From: Rebecca billardiae RCC1528
Taxonomy: Eukaryota > Protista > Haptophyta
Assembly (NCBI GenBank): GCA_965240325.2
Contig: OZ251245.1
Location: 248,001 to 312,000, forward strand
Length of the DNA: 64,000 nt
Reading direction: 5' to 3'
Each line of letters opens with the position of its first letter. Position 1 is the stretch's first letter. This document shows, one piece after another, positions 9,750 to 21,100 of the stretch. The notes below the pieces were generated by a model, which saw only the letters and a program-made list of their open reading frames with translations, searched no databases and had not been told where the DNA came from. Position numbers and translations under genes: made by a program.

Positions 9750-9989
9750 TCAGAGTTGAGAGTGCTCGGCAGCGAAGGCCAACGATCTCGAGCTTTTTGG
9801 CTCGTTTGAAATGTCGCCCGGACTCGGCCGCCGGACGGCGGCGGCGGCGGCCCAACGGCCGCCTCCGACTCCAACAATCCGGGCGCGGCGGGCAGAAGAG
9901 CGCTCCCGACCGGCGACCGGCGGACCGCAACAAGGCGGCTCGCTCCGCCACCTCTTTGTCGTAGGCGTCGCGAGGTGGTGGTGGGCGCG

Positions 9990-11080
9990 ATGGCGGACTT
10001 CAGCGACCCGGCGTTCATCGCGCGCGTGACGGCCGTGCTCTCCACGATCATGCTCGTCTCGGTGCAGGCCGGTCTGGGCTGCACGGTCACGGTGGGCGAC
10101 CTGCGCAACACCCTGCGCAAGCCGGTCGCGGTCGGTCTCGGGCTGTTCGCGCAAATCATCTTCATGCCGCTGGTGGCGTACATCCTGGCGCTCATGCTCG
10201 GGATGGAGGGCGACGATCTGCTCGGGCTGGCGCTCGTCGCCTGCACGCCAGGCGGCTCTATGTCGAACGTCTTCTCCTACTACGGCCGCGGCAACATGGC
10301 GCTGTCCATTGCGTTGACCGTCTTCTCCAACTTGCTCGCGTTCGGCACGATGCCGCTCGCACTGCTGATCCTCGCGCCATCCTCGTCCGTGCCCTTTCGC
10401 AAGATTGTGGAGACGCTCGCCCTGACCATCGTGCCCACGGGCGTCGGCATCGCGCTCAAGACGTTCCGGCCCCGCATCGCCATCTGGGGTGAGAAGATCG
10501 GCGCGGCCATCGGAGGGCTCACGGTGATCGGCGCCATCATCTCAGGCGTGGTGGGCAATATCGACAAGCTGGACCAGCTGCCGAGCGAGCTCTTCATCTC
10601 GACATCGATGCTCGGCCTCATTGGCATGGTGTTTGCGTACGCCATCGCCGTCTGCGGCCGCATCCGTGGCAGCCGGAGGTGCGTGCGAGCCGCGCGTGCT
10701 GCGCCCCGTCCCTCGCGCCGCACAGCTGACCAGCCGGTCGCGCGCGGCGCGTCGCGTGGCGCAGGATCACGCTGTGCATCGAGACGGGCGTCCAGAACCT
10801 GGCGCTCACCATCGCACTCATCTCGCTCTCCTTCAACAGCCAGTTCAGCATTCTCGTGTACAGCTACATGTTTGGCCTCATCATCTGCATCGAGTGCACG
10901 CTCTTCGTGGCGGCCATCCGCGTGCCGGCCGTGCGCCGCGTCGCGTGCGGCATCGATCCTGAGGAGGACTCAATCGATGAGATGGTCCCCGTGCCCGTGG
11001 CACAGCAATCCACGGGGCTGGACAAGGCGCAGGACGGCGATCACGACAACTCTGTGGGTATTGCCACGCAGCAGGCTTGA
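9990..11080 (+). CDS. Bile acid:sodium symporter (BASS/SLC10) family transporter
   Basis: Multi-TM protein with QIIFMP, CTPGGSMSN and IETGVQN motifs; intron 10679-10764. Confidence 0.92.
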
Positions 11081-12809
11081 TGGCGAATCTCCTCGATCTA
11101 TCGCCTCAAAGAGAGATATATATATATATATATGTGCTTCTAGTGACCGCCAGCCGCATCGCAACATCATCCGCGACGACGCGGTCGTCACTTCGTCAAT
11201 ATATATATCAGCAGCATATATCTCATCATGGTTAATAAGTCGGTGTGTGCCATTACGGTGTGTGTCGGTCATCATATACATACATACATACATATATATG
11301 TATATATTAACGACGTGGTATGCAACGGGCAGGCGTCAGAGTCAGCAAGCTGTAGCGGCAGATCGAGCAGCAGAGACAAACACCAGGATATATATATGCA
11401 TATATAGTATGTGTATGATGGCTGATTCCGTCTCCAATCAGTGATAAGAATCAGTACTTCGACAGACGTAAATCAGGAGAGCCGCGCCCTCGTGCCTGTG
11501 TCTTTAAATCATCATAGTATTAATATACCGATACATAGTAGTAGTATATATATATAGTATATCTGCTGCTGAGACCTGATATAAATATATTAAAATAATA
11601 GCAGCAGCATAAGACTGCTGTCGACACTGACTATAATACTATATAGTCAGTCATTATAGAATCAATAGGAACCGATATTAGCAGTGGCTCGGCTGGCGGA
11701 GAGCATCAATGGTATCGCATGTCGTCACAGTCATCATCAGCATCAGGACTTCATGCTGCTGCAATATTCTAAAGCTGCATGCTCACTCAGTCACGGACGC
11801 ACTGTCGTCGATCCGGAGCAGCTCGGCGCTGTCTAAGCCACTCAGTATACAGAGTATACTCACTCGGAACAGTCAGTGTCACTAGCTACTGACGGGCCAG
11901 CGGCACAGCCTAGCTGAGCCGCTGGCGGTGCTGCAGCACTGCGGCTGACGGCCCCGACTTACTCTCACAGCTTCACAGGTTGCGCTGGTTGCACCGGGCG
12001 CGGCCCAGTCGCTACAGACCCGGCCGTAGGCCGTGGCGTACCGACGCGCCCGTCCCGGCGCTGGGGGCGCCCGTATCTGCCCGTGACGACGATGCGCCCG
12101 CGGCTGACCGCGCCACCCGGCCATCACCCGCGACGGCCCTGAATCTGATGATTCCGGGACCGGCGGTCGGACCCGCGAGCAGCTGTATAGCACTAGTCAC
12201 GGGCCGGCTGCAGGTGGCATACTAGGCCGCGGTCGCGAATGGCCCGATGGGCGTGACACGACGCGTGACTCGGCCAATGACGGCAGCAGCCAGCACTCTA
12301 CGGTTCACTGTCGGGCGGTTCCTCGCGGAGCTGACCGCGACTACCCGCGCCCGGTACTGCCTGACGAGTGTTGTGAGTGCTGCCGCTACGACCGCGCCTG
12401 CTGCCGCCAGTGAGCCGCCTGCTAAGGCGACCGCGCTGACGATGACGCCGCCGCCACCGCGCAGGCCCGGAACGGGCGGAAGTCGACAGTCGAGCACCGC
12501 GTACTACCCGGTTCACTCCGATCCGACTGGTTCGGCGACGCTGCCAGCGGCGCCTCCGACTGCTGGGCACTGGTCTCACCGAGTCCCGGCGCGCTCGCGG
12601 CACTGGCAATGTCAAGCAGCGGCTCGTAAGTAACTCGGGCCGCCGCCGGCGGCGCCCGGCCGCTCGTGACCGCTCCGCATCCCGGCGGGCGTGGCACGCA
12701 TATGCGCGCAATGACGTAGGCGGACCATGATACTATTAGTACTGCTGCGCTAGCTGCAATGCTGTGGCAGCCGCCGGACGTGATTATAATGACTGCAGGG
12801 CAGTAGGCT

Positions 12810-13213
12810 TCAGCTATCGAAGTGGTCACGGAAGTGCATCTCCGTCTCTGACTTCCACGCGCCGCCAAGGAACGAGGCCGACTGCCCGTTCTTTCGCTTG
12901 TTCTTCGTACGGTCCTTGACCGAGTCCTCCTTCTTCTCACGCCCACGCTTTGCCACTTGCGTGGGCGCCTTCGCGGCTGCCACCGGCAGGCCTGAGGCTC
13001 GGGCTGGAGGGGCAGGCTCAGGCAGCTGAGCGCGCGAGGCCGTCATTCGTGAAACGGGCTCGTCGACCAGCGCGTGAGCATGCTGTGGGAGCTGGGGAGC
13101 GGGCATACCCTCAGCCGCAGCTAGAATTTCGTCCGCTGATGGCAACAGCCCAGTCGGCGCGATCGCTGTCGGATCATTGCTGCGTGCACGCGCACGGGCG
13201 CCGTCGCCGGCAT

Positions 13214-13275
<62 letters not shown>

Positions 13276-13466
13276 TCGTCGTCGTCGTCGTCATCCTCGT
13301 CATTGAGTGCGTTGGCTACTAGTGGCATGGGTACATGCGGCGCAGCACCCATATTCCGCTGCTCCTCGTCGCTGTCATCCGACTCGGAGCCATAGCCGCG
13401 CAGCGCCTCCATCGTGATGGACAAAGGCAGTCCGGTGCCGTCGACCATACCCCCATCGGCAGCCAT
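12810..13466 (-). CDS. Uncharacterised protein with poly-Asp tract and basic C-terminal motif (KRKNGQS...WKSETEM..RDHFD)
   Basis: ATG-initiated ORF with coding-like composition; alternative start MEALRGYGSESD at 13412; (GAC)n tract. Confidence 0.7.
13217..13293 (+). repeat. (GTC)n trinucleotide repeat encoding poly-Asp on the minus strand
   Basis: Directly visible in the sequence. Confidence 0.95.
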
Positions 13467-13891
13467 ACTACTATGTCGTTAATGAAGACCAGCCTTCTCG
13501 TGTTTGCCGCCGCCGGGCGGACGACGCTTCTATCATAAAACCGCGACTGCGAAACATGAGTTCGTATTTGATGGTCCTTTGGTTCGAGGAATTATGAGGG
13601 ATATTCCGGATCGTTACTCTAGCTTTTTCAGTTGTAGTCAGAGTTGTAGTCATGTGCTTACTTGTAGATGGTCCCAAATTACTCATCAGCTACGACTTGA
13701 ATAAGCCCAACTCATCAAGCTTTCCACATTTTGAATGTTGGGGGTACGGTTCCGTGCGAGTGCATATCATGAACGTCGTCAAATTCAGCATGAACTCACC
13801 TTCGGCTTGTGTGCATCACCAGATAATAACTTGGTTGGAGCCGGGTTCTTCACCCGGCTGGCCCAGCTCACGCCCGGCGCGGCCAGCTCCC

Positions 13892-16800
13892 ATGCGCCTT
13901 CCGGCTCACCCGCGCGCAACCGCGTGCACGGAGATCCTACTCGTGACAGACCCGGGTCCAGACCCCGATGACATCAAAGCGCTGGTCGTCCTTGCCACGC
14001 TGCACGCGAAGCAGCGGCGCTCGCGCGTGCGCCTGTGCGGCGTGATCGCGAACGGTGGGCGCCAGGCGGCTGCACGCGCGCAGCTCGCGCTGGCGACCCT
14101 CACGCACTTGCACGTGAGCGACGTGCCGGTCGGCGTGGGGAGTGCGGGCAAGCCGTACACGCCGCAGCCGCACGAGTACGCGCTCGAGGGCTACGATCAA
14201 GTCGATGTCTCGCAGCTGAGGCCCGGAGCCGACGTGATGCATGCGGCGCTCGAGCGCGCGCTGCCTCGCTCGCTGGTGGTCGTGCTCATCAGCTCGCTGC
14301 GCGACTTTGCGGACGCGATACTGGAGGACCCCAACACCGTGCTCGCAAAGGTGCGCGAGGTCGCCGTGATGGGCGGTCTCGAGCCCGACGCCGACGCGCC
14401 CTCCGGCTATCGTCCCGACTCGAGCGTAAACAACGAGTTTGACTGCGAAGCAGCCAAGACGGTGTACGACTTCTGCTTCGAGCGCGGCGTGCCGCTCTGC
14501 GTGATCTCGCGGGACGCGATCCCCATGCTGCCCATGCGCCTCGCCAAGTCCTTCGCCGAGCGCTCCGCCTGCCCGATCATGCGCTACCTCGCGGACGCGC
14601 AGTTCCTCGGCCTCGAGGGGCTGTGGCTGAAGCTGTGCGAGGGCAAGCTGCCCGCGCGCTGCACGAAGCAGTGGTACTTCGAGACGTTCTGCGGCGTGAC
14701 GTCCGCGGGCTTCGAGAAGCATGGCTACGCGCAGCTCGGCGCCGACGCCGACATCACGTCGCACCTGAACGGCTACGTCAAACCGTGAGCCGCCCGCCCG
14801 AGCGCAGCGCGTGTCGTGCGCGCGCGGCCCTCTGTCTGTCTGTGCGCACGGGCCGAGCGTGACCGGCCGCGCGCGCGCGCGCCCTTCTCACGTGCGTGCC
14901 CACAGGTACGACGTGGTGGCGCTGATGACTGTGCTGCCGCACACGCGCGCGCCCTTCGACGACTTTGCGCCGACCAAGCTGCCGGCTGCCGACGGCCGCG
15001 CCGTGCAGCACCGCCTGCTGCTCTCGGCTCGGCACTCGATCGGCACGACCGCCGTGCTCGAGCTCTTGCGGAACACGTACCACGACGTCCTCCTTGCGAC
15101 GAGCGGCGGCTCGTCGCCACCGCCGAGCCCGGGCGCGCGGCGCGGCGCGCCGCTCCTCTGCGCACAGCCCCGGCCGCGGCGGTTTCGGCTCGGCTGGTCG
15201 GGCGACGGCCTGCGAAAGATCTCTGCGGCGCAGACGCAGCAGATGGCGGGCGACTTCTCGTCAGGCGGCTCCTCGCAGAAGCGGCGCCAGCGGGCCGGCG
15301 GCTCGGGCGCGCCGCCGGAGGGCGGCTCGGAGGGCACGCCGCAGAGCGCGCCGGCCACCTCGCAGTCCGCCAAGTCCGCCGACGGCCGCGGCGACACCTT
15401 TGTCGCGGCGCGCACAGCGCTCGGCGTGCGCGGCGCGCTCGTCGCGCGCAACGGCGACGGCGTGCTGAGCGGCGAGGACGCTCGGTTCGTGGCGGAGTGC
15501 GCGGTGTGGGACGTGCGCGAGGCGCTCGGGCGCTCGACGCTGCTGCTCGGCGTGCTCAGCACGTGCCTCTTCGTCGCGGGCTTCATCGGCCAGCTCACAG
15601 CCTTCACGCTCTACCGCAGCGCGCGCGGCGCCACCGACCCCGTTCTCTTCTTCCTGCAGGTGCGAGTGTTTGGGCTGTGCATTGGGTTCGGCTTCATGGC
15701 GGCGCTGCTCGCGCTGCAGCCGGTGCACGCGCACCGGCACGCGCTCCTCGCGCTCGCGGTGACCACCGTCGCGTACACCGCCTACGTCGCGTACACGAAC
15801 GTGTTCCAGCTGCTCGGGCAGACGAGGCTGGCAAGCGTCCCCTACTTCGACTCGTGCCGTGCCGCGGACGAGCCGGACTGGGCGAGCGTGGCGCACGGCT
15901 ACTGGTACGTCGCTCACCTGGGTGTGCACGTGTACAGCATACTCGCGATCTCGACGGCGGCGTGGCGCTGGGGCCGCGCCACGTCGAGCGACGAGACGGG
16001 GCGCAGCCGCGGCTCGGCGACGGTGATGAGCGCGAGCGCGCTCCTCGATGCGCAGTGGTGGACGTTCGGCGCGCGGAGCTTCACGGCCGGCGTCAACTTT
16101 GCCATCATCGCGGCGCGCTGCTCGGCGGGCGGCGTGTACTCGTGGCCGCCCGCCGACATCGGGCCGATCGTCACGGCGACCGCGCTCATCCGGCTCGCGA
16201 TCGCCGCGGCGGCGCTGCGCGTGCGCGTGCGCGGCGCGATGCAGGCGCGCGCCGCGCGCCTCGTGTCCGCCGGGCTGCAGGCTCACACCGCGCTCGCCCC
16301 ACTCCTGGAGCTGTACGGAGCGAACGCGTTCGATCTCGGCGCCATCTGGGAGTCGGCGGCGCACTCGCTCCACGGCGCGCCCGTCGACGAGAACGCCCGG
16401 CACCGGCTGACGCTCACCGAGTCGATGCGCAGCTCCAGCCGCCAGTCTGAGCGCACCTCCAAGGCGACGACCGACGACGGTACAGTCCGCTCGTCCTCAG
16501 AGCCGCCCGAGCCGCCCCCGGCGCCGCGCCGCTCCTCGCGCTCGCTCGACGACGGCTCGGAGGCGGCGCCGATGCACGTGCTGCTGCAGGAGGCGTTCGG
16601 GCGCTCCTCCGGCCGGGGCGGCATCGCGTGGCAGCGGTCGCGCTCGACGCTTGGCGCACAACACCACCCACTCGCCCTCACCGACGTGAGCTCGCTCACG
16701 CGGCGCGCGGTCAGCTTCGCGCGGCGCAAGGCTCCCGCTGCCGCGGCGCAACCGCCCGCCCTCGGCACCGAGGTCGAGGCCACGGCGGTCGATGCGTATG

Positions 16801-17648
16801 CCGTGCACTCGCCCGCGGACGAGCCGCGCGAGTGCGCGCGCGCGCTCGCGCGCTGGGCTGAGGCGTTCGAGGCGGCGCAGGGCCGCCCGCCAACCGTGTT
16901 CGTGCACGAGGTCGGCGCGGACCCGGCGCTCACGCCCGGCGAGCTGCTCTCCCACCTGCCCTTCTACCTCGCGCAATCTCGGCGGCTGCTGCTGCTCGTC
17001 GGCCCTCACTTCCTGAGCCGGCTCTCCGAGTGCCTCCCGCTTCACCTGTGGCTGGTGATGGGAGGGTCGATGCGGAGCGTCGACGTGCAGATCGTCGCAC
17101 GCGACGAGGACGAGCGCGCCGCCATCGTCACCGCCTTCGACACCTTCCATGTGATGCATGCGGACGACGGAGGCGGCGGCTCGAGCGCGGCCGCGCGCGC
17201 GGCGCAGCCGGCACTCGACGGCTCGTCAGCGCTGCAGCAGTCCATGTGCGCGCGCGCGCGGATCCGCGCGGTCGAGCTCGCGCGTGTCTCGCGATTCAAC
17301 GCCGCCGTCCGCCTGTACCTCCCCCGCGTGATCGGCGCCGTGGAGACGCTGGCCAGCTTGGCCGAGGCGGGGCCGCCGCCGCCGCCGCCGCTGGGCGTGG
17401 CCGAGCCCGCAGACGCCGACGCGCCTCCGCCGCTCTCAGTCGCCGCGGTGAACGTCGAGGCGGACGGCGTGGCGAGCAGCACGGATGGACGGGCGCCTCC
17501 GCCGCGGCCCAGCCCGCAGCCCAAGCCGGACGCCGACGCGTCGAACGGCTCGACCCATGAGCGCATCACCCCCGCAGGCGATCAGATTCGGGCTCATCAT
17601 CCGGACTTCGCCCATCGGCAGTCCAGCCAGCCCGGCGCCGGCGGGTGA
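13892..17648 (+). CDS. XopQ/HopQ1-like nucleoside-hydrolase domain + about 6 TM helices + degenerate TIR-like domain
   Basis: Exons 13892-14784 and 14906-17648 joined in frame by a GTGAGC...CACAG intron. N-domain: VTDPGPDPDD, VAVMGG, PDSSVNNEFD, KPYDVVAL. TM block about 15540-16230. C-domain: DAYAVHS...RPPTVF...LPFYLAQSRRLLLLVGPHFLSRL. Confidence 0.8.
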
Positions 17649-18165
17649 CGCCTGACGGTCGTCTGCGCCCGCGCAAGCTAAGACACGCCGGACGGACCCG
17701 GAGCCAGCATGCGCCGTGAGGCGCGCCCTCGGAGATGGCGAGCTGCCGATGCTGCTGGCGCTTCATCCCAGGGCGCATTCGCGCAGCGCCGCAGCACTCA
17801 CTTACAGTAGCAGCATGCCTGCGGGCAGCGGTCCTGAGTCGAGCCCTACGGAGGGTCGGAGGCAGACTCGGAGTCGCTACTTCACTGTACCACTGTAGTA
17901 TGAGCAGCGTACTGTGCCGACCGCGCATCTAATACTATGTAGCCCTACTGTGCGTCTCTTATTCTTAGTAAACTGTACTATGTACAGTAGCAGTGCACTC
18001 GGCATTCTGTCCTGAACTCCAGCAATGACAGTCTCATGAACAGTCAGAGGCCGCGGCGGTCTTGACGAGATCGGGCCCCGACCGGCCGGCCAATCGGGGC
18101 CTTCATTCAGTGCGCGACGAGGCGGCAAGACGACGACGTGTCGTTGGGCAGCACAGCCGATGCAA

Positions 18166-21100
18166 ATGCGCGCTGCACTCCTGGCGTGCGCGCTGCTCGC
18201 GTGCGCGCGTGGCGCAGTGTGCGCCTTGGCCGTACGTGGCCCAGTGCACGCGCTGCCTGGGCGCACGGCCGTCCAGCCGCGCGCGCGCGCGCGCGCGTCG
18301 ACGCTGGAGCCAGCGGGCGCCGACAACGACGACGTCGACGAGGACATTGACGACGAGCTCGAGGAGGACGAGGGCGCAATCGTGGGCGTCGCGACGACGC
18401 CAAGTCCCATCGGCCGGCTCCGCGAGGTTGACGTGTGCGACGAGATGCAGAGCTCTTACCTCTCGTACGCGATGAGCGTGATCCTGTCTCGCGCGCTGCC
18501 GGACATCCGCGACGGCCTGAAGCCGGTGCAGCGGCGGATCCTGTACGCGATGGACCAGCTCAGCCTCACGCCGGGCGGGCGGTACCGCAAGTGCGCCCGC
18601 GTCGTCGGCGAGGTGCTGGGCAAGTACCACCCGCACGGCGACACGTCCGTGTACGACGCGCTCGTCCGGATGGCGCAGCCGTTTAATGTCCGGTGCGCGC
18701 GCTCGGCCTCGGGCGCGCGTGCGTGCGCGCGCGCGTGCGCGTGCGTGCCTGCCCTCGGGTGTGCGTGCGTGCGCGCGGGTGCGACCACGCTTCGAGCGTG
18801 TGCGCGGCCGCGCACGCTGCACGCTGAGCCGTGGGCGCGGGTGCCGCGCGCGGCGCGAGCGCGCGCGCCGCCGCCGCGTCTGACCCCGCGCTGCCCCCGC
18901 CTGGGCCGTGTGCGTGCGTGCGCCCGCGCGCGCTCGCGCGTGTGCCAGCCTGACGCTCGTGGACGGGCACGGCAACTTTGGCTCGCAGGACCCGGACCCG
19001 CCCGCTGCCATGCGCTACACGGAGTGCAAGCTCACACGCGGTGCGCGCGCGCCCGCGCCCGCGGCGGCGGGCCGAGCGTGCCGCTCAGGCGGCGGCGCGC
19101 GGGCTCAGGCTGGGCGGTGGACCCGTGCGGCTCGCGCGCGTGCCGCGCGCGCGGGCGCGCTCGGCTCGCCGCGCGCGCCGCCGCGATTGACGCGTGCGCG
19201 TGCGCCCCCGCGCGCCTCGACGCCTCCGCCCTTGGCCACGCCGCGACCGCCTCGCCCTCCCGCCTCCCCCGCGCCCGTCACCCGCGCGCGCGCTACGCCG
19301 CGGATGTCTGTGCCTGCCCGCACGTCGCGCGGCGCTGGCTCCGGCCCCGGCAGTCGCGGCCGAGGGCCTGCTCGCAGAGACGGCGATGCAGACGGTTCCG
19401 TTTGGCGACAACTTTGACGCGTCGGAGACGGAGCCGCTCGTGCTCCCGGCGAAGCTGCCGATGCTGCTGATCAACGGCGCCGTGGGCATCGCGGTCGGTA
19501 TGGCTACGTCAATCCCGCCACACAACCCCACCGAGCTGCTCGACGCGACCGTCGCGCTGCTGAATGACGAAACGCTCGGCGACGAGGCGCTGCTCGGGAT
19601 CGTGCGCGCGCCCGACTTCCCCACCGGCGGTGAGCTCCTGGGACTTGACGGCGTGAAGGCGCTGTACAGCACTGGCCAGGGCGTGATGCAGCTGCGGGGG
19701 AAGGTTCGCACAGAGCAGCTTGGCCGTGGGCGCGGCGGCGGCGCGGCCGACGGCGGCGCCGAGCGCGGCGGCGGCGTGGGCTCGGCCGGCGCGGGCGCGG
19801 CGCGCGGCGGCACGCCGCGGCACGCGCTCGTCGTGAGCGAGCTTCCGTACGCCGTGACGAAGAACGCGTTCATCACCAAGGTGGCCGACCTCGTGCAGGC
19901 CGGACGGCTCGCCGGCGTCGCCGAGATCCGCGACGAGTCCGACCGCGACGGCATGCGCGTCGTGCTGGAGCTCAAGCGAGACGCGAACCCGGCGGTTGTG
20001 ACGAACCACGTGCTGAAGGCGACGCCGCTGCAGTCGTCGTTTGCCGGGAATCTGCTCGCGCTCACGCAGGACGGGCGGCAGCCCGCGCGCGTCTCTCTGC
20101 GCACCGCGCTGCTCGAGTTCGTCACCTTTCGCAAGCTCACCACCCGCCGGCGCGCCCAGTTCGAGAAAGATCGCGCGCGCTCGCGGCTGCACGTGACCGT
20201 GGGCCTGACCGCGGCACTGCGGGACATTGACACGGTTGTCGGCATCCTGCGAGGGGCGAAGACGCTCGAGGCGGCGCGGGAGGCGCTCACCGGGCCCGAC
20301 CCGCCGCTCGCGCCGCTGCCGAGCGCCAGGCTGCTCACCGAAGCCACCGCGAACGTGCGCCGCGCCGCGGCGACACCGGCCGCCGCGCCGCCGCCGCCGG
20401 GCGCGGGCGCGCCGGTAGCGTCCGCAGCGCCCGCAGCCTCCGGCGCCGCCGCGCCCGCCCCGAGCGGAGCGGCCGCCGAGCTCTCCGCCGCCGTGGGCTC
20501 GCTCTCGGTGGTGCAGGCGGACGCGATCCTCGCGATGCCGCTGCGCAGGCTCACCGGGCTCGAGGCCGAGGCGCTCGAGCAGGAGTGCCAGGCCCTCGCC
20601 GCCTCGATCGACCGCCTCAACACGCTGCTAACTGACGACGCCGTGTTGGTGCAGACTCTCGTCGACGAGGCCGCGGCGATGCGCGCGGCATTCGGCTGCG
20701 AGCGGCGCACGCGGATCAACGAGGCCGACGGCTCCGCGATCCTGACCGACGCCGGTGCGCGCGCCGCGCCGCGCAGCGCCGCGCAGCCGCGCGGCCCGAT
20801 GGCGCCAGGCCGCGCGCGCACTGCCCGCGCGCGCGCCCCGCGCGCCGCGCGCCACGCCGCGCGCCCGCGCCGCGCGCTCACGGCGTGCGCACCCGCCACG
20901 CCCCGCCCCGCCACGATCTCCACGACGCCCTGCGTGGGGGCGGCGCGGCGCACGCGCGCAGACCTGATCTCGAACGAGCGCTGCGCCGTCCTCATGACCG
21001 CGCGCGGCTACGTCAAGCGCATGCTCCTCGAGGATTTCGGCGCGCAGCGGCGCGGCACGCGCGGCAAGGCGGCGGTGGCGTCTGGCGCGATGCGCGATGC

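Follow-up and report, generated by a model that had tools for sequence, protein, structure and literature searches.

For twenty years the type III effector XopQ counted as an orphan enzyme. It has now been reported to convert the TIR product 2' cyclic ADP-ribose (2'cADPR) to ADP-ribose (ADPR) with a kcat/Km of 1.4e7 M-1 s-1, to leave nucleosides, 3'cADPR, cADPR, phosphoribosyl-AMP (pRib-AMP) and 2',3'-cyclic nucleoside monophosphates (2',3'-cNMPs) uncleaved, and to be inactivated by the substitution D120N, or by D120N together with D399N (Roth et al., June 2026 preprint, 10.64898/2026.06.15.732069). The gene described here encodes a relative of this enzyme. It lies on the + strand of a 64,000-nt window (the whole stretch of DNA that was analysed: Rebecca billardiae RCC1528, contig OZ251245.1, positions 248,001-312,000 of the forward strand), to which the positions below refer, and would join in one polypeptide an N-terminal XopQ/HopQ1-like hydrolase domain, a six-helix membrane block and a C-terminal TIR-fold domain. 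This three-part architecture is conserved in a large, paralogue-rich pavlovophyte family. By a slight preference, we regard the family as TIR-nucleotide signalling proteins and the copy in the window as a signal-hydrolysing or regulatory member.

Haptophytes are ecologically important and exposed to giant viruses. In Gephyrocapsa huxleyi, TIR proteins with N-terminal extracellular regions or multiple transmembrane (TM) helices are among those differentially expressed under virus infection (New Phytol 2025, PMC12489294). These TM-TIR proteins, with one or several TM segments, likewise consist of TM helices followed by a cytosolic TIR domain, which resembles the signal-producing TIRs of plants and SARM1, but they keep the catalytic Glu, unlike the window copy, and the main text of that article describes no hydrolase fusion (PMC12489294). 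For the hydrolase, a clade of HopQ1-like proteins (HLPs) from heterokont and haptophyte algae was described in 2018 (Piechocki et al., PMC6019455), and the window N-domain very likely belongs to it. That study covers the hydrolase-like domain alone and the words 'transmembrane' and 'TIR' are absent from it; the fusion partner is new. Each part of the protein and two of the pairings (algal HLPs; haptophyte TM-TIRs) are therefore already described separately. No paper was found in the literature on the three-part fusion, and its public entries are unnamed or named for the hydrolase alone. An earlier sequence-only reading of this DNA knew the architecture from no characterised protein; it turns out to belong to an expanded family that includes the uncharacterised public entries KAG8470857.1 and KAJ1636960.1. 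The same reading had mentioned a degradation of 2',3'-cNMPs by XopQ, which is contradicted by the recent preprint (10.64898/2026.06.15.732069, Fig. S5).

The hydrolase part of the gene is made of the following elements.

13892..14784, + strand: exon 1, start codon and most of the XopQ/HopQ1-like domain (amino acids 1-298, last codon split)
13946..13972, + strand: TDPGPDPDD, the non-canonical DxxxDxDD Ca2+/catalytic motif, aligned to XopQ and invariant in the family alignment
13961-13963, + strand: Asp, counterpart of XopQ D120 (second Asp of the motif), placed by a chain offset of 81 (D39 to D120)
14785..14905, + strand: intron of 121 nt, GTGAGC...CCACAG, phase 2, canonical GT-AG
14906..15101, + strand: start of exon 2, C-terminal end of the hydrolase, placed via the continuous homologue P0002
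14910-14912, + strand: Asp of the YD motif, counterpart of XopQ D399, placed by the P0002 alignment (index 318 plus the offset of 81)

The N-domain matches the Pfam family IU_nuc_hydro (PF01156) at 3.7e-12, and its best matches in the PDB and NCBIfam are by far those to XopQ. In the PDB, the XopQ entries 4KL0, 4P5F and 7JLU were matched with E values of about 3e-23 (best 2.7e-23), against 0.012 for the best canonical nucleoside hydrolase. In NCBIfam, the XopQ equivalog model NF041355 was matched at 1e-28 and ribosylpyrimidine nucleosidase at 0.007. Overall the matches to canonical enzymes span E values of 0.007-0.27, and the canonical DxDxxxDD motif is absent. The motif found in its place, DxxxDxDD, is that of the HLP branch as defined in PMC6019455. 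The characteristic segments pair with those of XopQ: TDPGPDPDD with TDPNKDPDD, PDSSVNNEFD..AA with PDTRAYNNATD..AA and LGLEGLW...QWYFETF with ALKGLW...AWFFRTF. The second catalytic Asp required a detour: the head of exon 2 by itself gave no XopQ match in the PDB because the piece is too short, and D399 was mapped instead via P0002, whose ...VKPYDVIALM... aligns with ...LYDPLTLL... of XopQ. As judged from these alignments, the N-domain is a member of the XopQ/HopQ1-like branch and not an ordinary Rih/URH hydrolase, and both catalytic aspartates, the counterparts of D120 and D399, are kept. The sequence-only reading had placed the domain in this branch from the motifs TDPGPDPDD, PDSSVNNEFD..AA, L.GLW...W.F.TF and YD..AL; all four are present and aligned to the matching XopQ segments, and the placement stands.

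The XopQ/HopQ1/RipB effectors of Xanthomonas, Pseudomonas syringae and Ralstonia share with the window protein the fold branch, the DxxxDxDD, NN..D and GLW...W.F.TF motifs and both aspartates. In contrast to theirs, the window gene is eukaryotic and contains an intron, and its hydrolase domain is joined with a membrane block and a TIR domain; the product has neither a secretion signal nor the N-terminal 14-3-3 region. The domain falls short of the type III effector XopQ equivalog: it scores 100 bits where 500 are required, the gene has an intron of spliceosomal type, and no more than 12 residues stand ahead of the domain. It is a homologue of XopQ and not an effector. A contig scan yielded no bacterial relatives, but its patterns were algal-specific (D[PV]GPDPDD) and could not match XopQ, so that this result says little.

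Two + strand open reading frames (ORFs) are found at the locus, 13652-14788 and 14811-17648. The GC content of the window climbs from 0.54 to about 0.70 near 13900, and 13892 is the first ATG of the GC-rich part, 12 codons ahead of the first conserved residue of the N-domain. The donor CC/GTGAGC (14784/14785) and the acceptor CCACAG/G (14905/14906) leave both exons in frame; splicing yields 3633 nt of coding sequence, or 1211 amino acids, and the junction reads G-Y-V-K-P/Y-D-V-V-A-L-M. The unspliced frame terminates at the TGA at 14786-14788, and since the Asp of Y-D is catalytic, an unspliced product would lack part of the active site. The joined motif G.VKP[YF]DV.A[LV]M is unbroken in at least 14 homologues, including the MMETSP transcript P0096, KAJ1636960.1 (Pavlovales sp. 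CCMP2436) and KAG8470857.1 (Diacronema lutheri). Among homologous loci, L001 (metagenome) and L006 (CCMP2436) have no intron where the window gene is split, and in L003 and L004 a GT-AG intron lies 2 and 8 nt, respectively, from the position of the window intron. The comparative evidence is strong that the two ORFs are one spliced two-exon gene, as the sequence-only reading had supposed when it joined them in frame by one intron into a product of about 1210 residues. Three public RNA runs were also checked and contained only short contigs of relatives. One of these, of 153 nt, aligns so that 79 unaligned letters face the 79 nt of 14706-14784; this geometry fits an intron-less junction, but the contig belongs to a relative and does not prove the splice of the window gene at the RNA level.

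The GT-AG introns of three homologous genes (14785-14905 in the window, L003:1834-1939 and L004:1706-1820) fall within 8 nt of each other at positions that differ: after the CC of the Pro codon, after the T of the Tyr codon, and between Tyr and Val. Such clustered, non-identical introns could reflect intron sliding or repeated gain at one spot. Upstream, low-GC islands (47-54%) are found at 11000-12000 and 13500-13900 of the window in surroundings of 65-79% GC, the second immediately 5' of the start codon (13892); both presumably correspond to promoters or sequence between genes.

It is very improbable that the fusion is an artefact of the gene model, covering two separate genes, or that the locus is a pseudogene drifting after duplication. 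In favour of this view, the splice is predicted from comparison, long ORFs arise by chance in GC-rich DNA, the catalytic residues of the TIR domain are lost (see below) and the public gene call P0001 spans exon 2 alone. Yet without splicing the hydrolase would end one residue short of its second catalytic Asp, and a canonical GT-AG intron restores the motif conserved in the homologues. The frame is also intact over 1211 codons, the two modelled folded domains reach a predicted local distance difference test (pLDDT) of 84-92, and the near-invariant positions of the family are all kept.

The C-terminal part comprises one domain and its former catalytic motif.

16785..17369, + strand: predicted divergent TIR-fold domain with a low-confidence Gly/Ala-rich insertion loop (AlphaFold2, structure searches)
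17019..17051, + strand: degenerate catalytic motif RLSECLPLHLW (family LWCxxEL.xW; alignment columns)

The AlphaFold2 model of this C-domain, computed with 68 sequences, has a pLDDT of 91.5, a predicted template modelling score (pTM) of 0.86 and an alternating strand-helix core. With this model the top 30 Foldseek hits in the PDB are all TIR domains of plant, animal and bacterial origin, and all 30 matches listed in Swiss-Prot are TIR proteins, Roq1 and BdTIR among them; the E values are modest (9e-3 and 5e-4). VIA-align gave Z scores of 10.7 for RPP1/RPPT, 10.3 for SARM1, 10.2 for MyD88 and 10.0 for AbTir over 118-146 residues, all 50 rows being TIR domains. A shape search of the Atlas returned haptophyte clusters with TM-scores of 0.65-0.76, one of them automatically named TIR, followed by TIR, TIR_2 and ThsB_TIR at 0.49-0.55. 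The sequence of the C-domain by itself has no match in Pfam (E up to 1), the PDB, PADLOC or NCBIfam. The family profile matches the TIR domain of SIGIRR at E 0.01 in the beta-C/alpha-C region, and weak Pfam TIR_2 matches are found in six of the 68 relatives (best E 0.001). From the predicted structure, the assignment of the TIR fold made by the sequence-only reading is sound; by sequence, membership is remote. An affiliation with HET was considered and rejected, Pfam HET being matched in one of the 68 relatives (E 0.54) against six for TIR_2. The HET and TIR labels may overlap among the AlphaFold database (AFDB) clusters that contain the six-helix module.

The conservation of the architecture was assessed from both ends. 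At E up to 1e-3, an exhaustive search with the C-domain profile returned 1005 cluster representatives, in which the domain is nearly always C-terminal, and 23 of the best 150 C-domain proteins carry a XopQ-like domain in the same ORF. Pfam IU_nuc_hydro was confirmed in nine of the 19 scanned. Conversely, in all four long loci fetched via N-domain homologues the same strand encodes a TIR-like domain some 2 kb further downstream. The fusion is also carried by one MMETSP transcript and by the NCBI proteins KAG8470857.1 and KAJ1636960.1. Among the 8000 candidates considered, a number probably filled by words of low complexity, a word-indexed protein search with exon 2 or the C-domain yielded the protein and a single relative. 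Most members keep the hydrolase motifs intact; those of P0098, P0113, P0170 and P0180 are degenerate, and all combinations of live and dead domains occur in the family. The degeneracy forms a mosaic (P0098, P0113, P0170, P0180 and P0104), with proteins in which the hydrolase is dead and the TIR domain intact, the reverse, or both domains degenerate.

Gene models of this family in pavlovophytes are under-annotated, the TIR half being missing or the gene split in some. The NCBI model P0011 (CCMP2436, 491 amino acids; L006:8001-9774) covers the hydrolase part only, and some 1.4 kb further downstream the same strand has an unannotated open frame with a TIR-like domain (L006:10470-11657). The public model P0011 is probably truncated.

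The family motif WxxxE places a Glu four residues after a Trp, following strand beta-C. This is the Trp-Glu spacing of the plant WCLxEL and Toll-like receptor WCxYEL motifs and of W638/E642 in SARM1; in NAD+-cleaving TIRs the motif stands where helix alpha-C begins. In the window copy Ser takes the place of the catalytic Trp, and Pro (17037-17039) that of the catalytic Glu (S-E-C-L-P), the position being assigned by motif alignment and secondary-structure position, not by residue-level superposition. Of 150 relatives, 100 keep the Glu, as do 14 of the 23 hydrolase-fused ones, and Pro is found only in the window copy. Since both the Trp and the Glu of WxxxE are lost, the TIR domain of the window copy is probably not an NADase (an enzyme cleaving nicotinamide adenine dinucleotide, NAD+). 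The near-invariant family positions D24, W36, W101, G105, D131, F133 and N184 are all kept. Compared with the NAD+-cleaving TIRs (RPP1/RPS4/RUN1/BdTIR, SARM1, AbTir and ThsB), the predicted fold is the same (Z 9-10.7) and the LWCxxEL spacing of the family matches, but identity is 8-15%, an extra insertion loop and C-terminal helices are present, and Ser and Pro stand for Trp and Glu in the window copy. The sequence-only reading had proposed a TIR_2-like pattern, of which D.Y.VHS, P.VF.H, LP.YL..S and G..F..RL are indeed found; the catalytic segment, given as RLWC..E, actually reads RLSECLP.

In a tree of the fused members, the window copy groups weakly beside P0077, which bears the Glu, and the starred branches require the Glu state to have changed at least twice. 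A single loss shared with the Glu-less P0002, P0104, P0113 and P0170 was considered and is rejected by the tree.

Makers and breakers of a signal are known to coexist on one polypeptide: CD38 is both cADPR synthase and hydrolase, and bacterial GGDEF-EAL composites combine the two activities, one domain being often degenerate and regulatory. By analogy, the TIR domains of the family would cluster at the membrane and produce a cyclic ADP-ribose-type signal from NAD+, and the fused XopQ-like domain would hydrolyse this 2'cADPR-like signal to ADPR. The signal would then be made and ended by one polypeptide as in CD38 or GGDEF-EAL proteins, although folds and chemistry are unrelated to theirs and the likeness is one of analogy only. 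The hydrolase-TIR paralogues with one degenerate domain may likewise recall the GGDEF-EAL composites. The window copy, with its live-looking hydrolase and dead-looking TIR domain, would most likely be a signal-terminating or threshold-setting member, whose TIR domain would only associate with catalytic TIR paralogues or regulate the hydrolase. A coupling of TIR signalling to a nucleotide enzyme on one polypeptide had been proposed in the sequence-only reading. It can be retained for the family, not clearly for the window copy with its lost Trp and Glu, and it is strengthened by the finding that XopQ hydrolyses the TIR product 2'cADPR (10.64898/2026.06.15.732069).

Several points weigh against this interpretation. 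Making and breaking on one polypeptide does not apply to the window copy, whose TIR domain has no catalytic motif, and the functions given for this protein and for all family members are predictions from comparison. Identity to XopQ is low and a specificity for 2'cADPR cannot be read from sequence. TIR products vary widely across lineages. At the sequence level, support for the TIR domain is weak (no Pfam match for the window copy; Foldseek E values of 5e-4 to 9e-3), and the splice, as said, is predicted from comparison. Finally, the HopQ1-like proteins of fungi, mosses and algae have no demonstrated substrate (PMC6019455). This last point also speaks for an alternative that we regard as unlikely, in which the two soluble domains would have unrelated functions: a membrane-tethered hydrolase for another ribosyl compound (nucleoside salvage, cytokinin-like or NAD-unrelated metabolites) would be joined to a non-enzymatic TIR-like scaffold, and the fusion would be uninformative on TIR nucleotides. 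The TIR domain of the window copy has indeed no catalytic residues, about one third of the family lacks the Glu, and animal TIRs are mostly adaptors. However, XopQ, the nearest characterised enzyme, acts specifically on a TIR product and does not accept nucleosides, and two thirds of the family retain the WxxxE typical of NAD+-cleaving TIRs. Coincidence is moreover an unlikely explanation for a conserved and repeatedly duplicated fusion of a TIR domain with the sole hydrolase family for which a TIR product is a known substrate.

Between the two soluble domains lies the membrane block.

15492..16268, + strand: predicted six-helix membrane block (AlphaFold2 and hydropathy)
15540-15596, 15660-15716, 15741-15797, 15909-15965, 16080-16136 and 16167-16223, + strand: hydrophobic cores (hydropathy)
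16290..16319, + strand: juxtamembrane motif ALAPLLELYG (family A.LAPL.G.G; family alignments)

Modelled by AlphaFold2 with 51 relatives, the block forms six long helices (pLDDT 84.5, pTM 0.81), and a cluster of 5-7 hydrophobic segments is found at the same place in 50 of 53 relatives. The tally of Lys and Arg is 13 on the proposed cytosolic side versus 4 outside, which fits an N-in/C-in topology; both soluble domains are therefore predicted to be cytosolic. A signal peptide is not expected because the hydrolase domain starts after only 12 residues. These results agree with the sequence-only reading, which had counted about six TM helices, no signal peptide and two cytosolic domains.

No solved fold was matched by the block in the PDB, where the best Foldseek E value was 0.17 and the hits were generic helical bundles, and the Atlas search gave nothing coherent (TM-score at most 0.44 by query). 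A voltage-gated-like or TRP-like channel was considered and ruled out: there is no fold match and no pore loop, the loop between TM5 and TM6 being only about 10 residues long. Coherent matches were confined to AFDB clusters that bear the names C-type lectin, HET and TIR domain-containing (R1DYT9, R1EBV3, A0A7S2NVP6 and A0A0M0K3D9), with TM-scores of 0.40-0.50, and an Atlas feature search returned haptophyte hypothetical proteins. The block is lineage-specific and recurs in haptophyte lectin, HET and TIR proteins. The protein P0213 consists of N-terminal leucine-rich repeats (LRRs), a multi-TM cluster and the TIR-like domain of the family. Together with the AFDB clusters it suggests a modular receptor-like superfamily.

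Because relatives carry sensor-type domains at the N-terminus, this slot may be ligand-binding. In a second alternative, which we consider doubtful, the XopQ-like domain would be a receptor for a TIR-made nucleotide (2'cADPR or ADPR), bound in the way of the ADPR seen in XopQ crystals, and would control the membrane block as effector, hydrolysis acting as a timer. The effector might be an ion leak or channel or a device for membrane remodelling, and the whole a single-chain analogue of Thoeris, which pairs a TIR maker with a ligand-gated effector. The LRRs of P0213 and the C-type-lectin-named R1DYT9, set on the same 6TM-TIR core, are in line with such a role, as is the confidently folded membrane block with its conserved position. 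Some paralogues also retain the domain despite degenerate hydrolase motifs, as expected if binding suffices. On the other hand, most members including the window copy retain every catalytic aspartate, and the membrane block resembles no channel or transporter fold. Furthermore, LRR and lectin domains would be extracellular and the hydrolase cytosolic, so that the slots are not equivalent.

A wider proposal can be made, which we put forward tentatively and with less than even confidence: the ancestral eukaryotic job of the HopQ1/XopQ-like family would be the turnover of TIR-made cyclic ADP-ribose, and haptophytes would run a membrane-bound TIR pathway of the 2'cADPR type. The fusion would then be a 'Rosetta stone' that unites the maker (TIR) and the breaker (XopQ-like domain) in a single chain. 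The off-switch would be eukaryotic, imitated or borrowed by the bacterial XopQ effectors and not invented by them, and copies with a dead TIR domain and a live hydrolase, such as that of the window, would be dedicated negative regulators. In the light of the recent result on XopQ, the fusion of a rare hydrolase type to a TIR domain in a large algal family is independent genomic evidence that both activities belong to one pathway, which it extends to haptophytes. It also points to a eukaryotic counterpart, or possibly the source, of an effector that is widespread in plant pathogens. The family also offers natural paralogues with each domain alive or dead and a new membrane module.

The remaining parts of the gene are two low-complexity linkers and the C-terminal tail.

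15102..15491, + strand: linker 1, Gly/Ala/Ser/Arg-rich (composition; no family match)
16320..16784, + strand: linker 2, Ala/Ser/Arg-rich (composition)
17382..17648, + strand: C-terminal tail, Pro/Ala-rich, with the TGA stop codon (17646-17648; sequence)

The flanking genes are housekeeping genes. Upstream, an ORF for a transporter of the sodium/bile-acid symporter family (SBF) is found at 9975-11441 (+ strand; Pfam 1.4e-33). Downstream, at 18160-19470 (+ strand), lies a gene for DNA gyrase/topoisomerase IV subunit A (GyrA; Pfam DNA_topoisoIV, 1.2e-33), which seems to be split by introns and to carry an N-terminal extension, and whose product is probably organelle-targeted. Between the transporter and the hydrolase-TIR gene, and divergent from the latter, an ORF of 218 amino acids at 12810-13466 (- strand) has no Pfam match and contains about 29 consecutive Asp residues.

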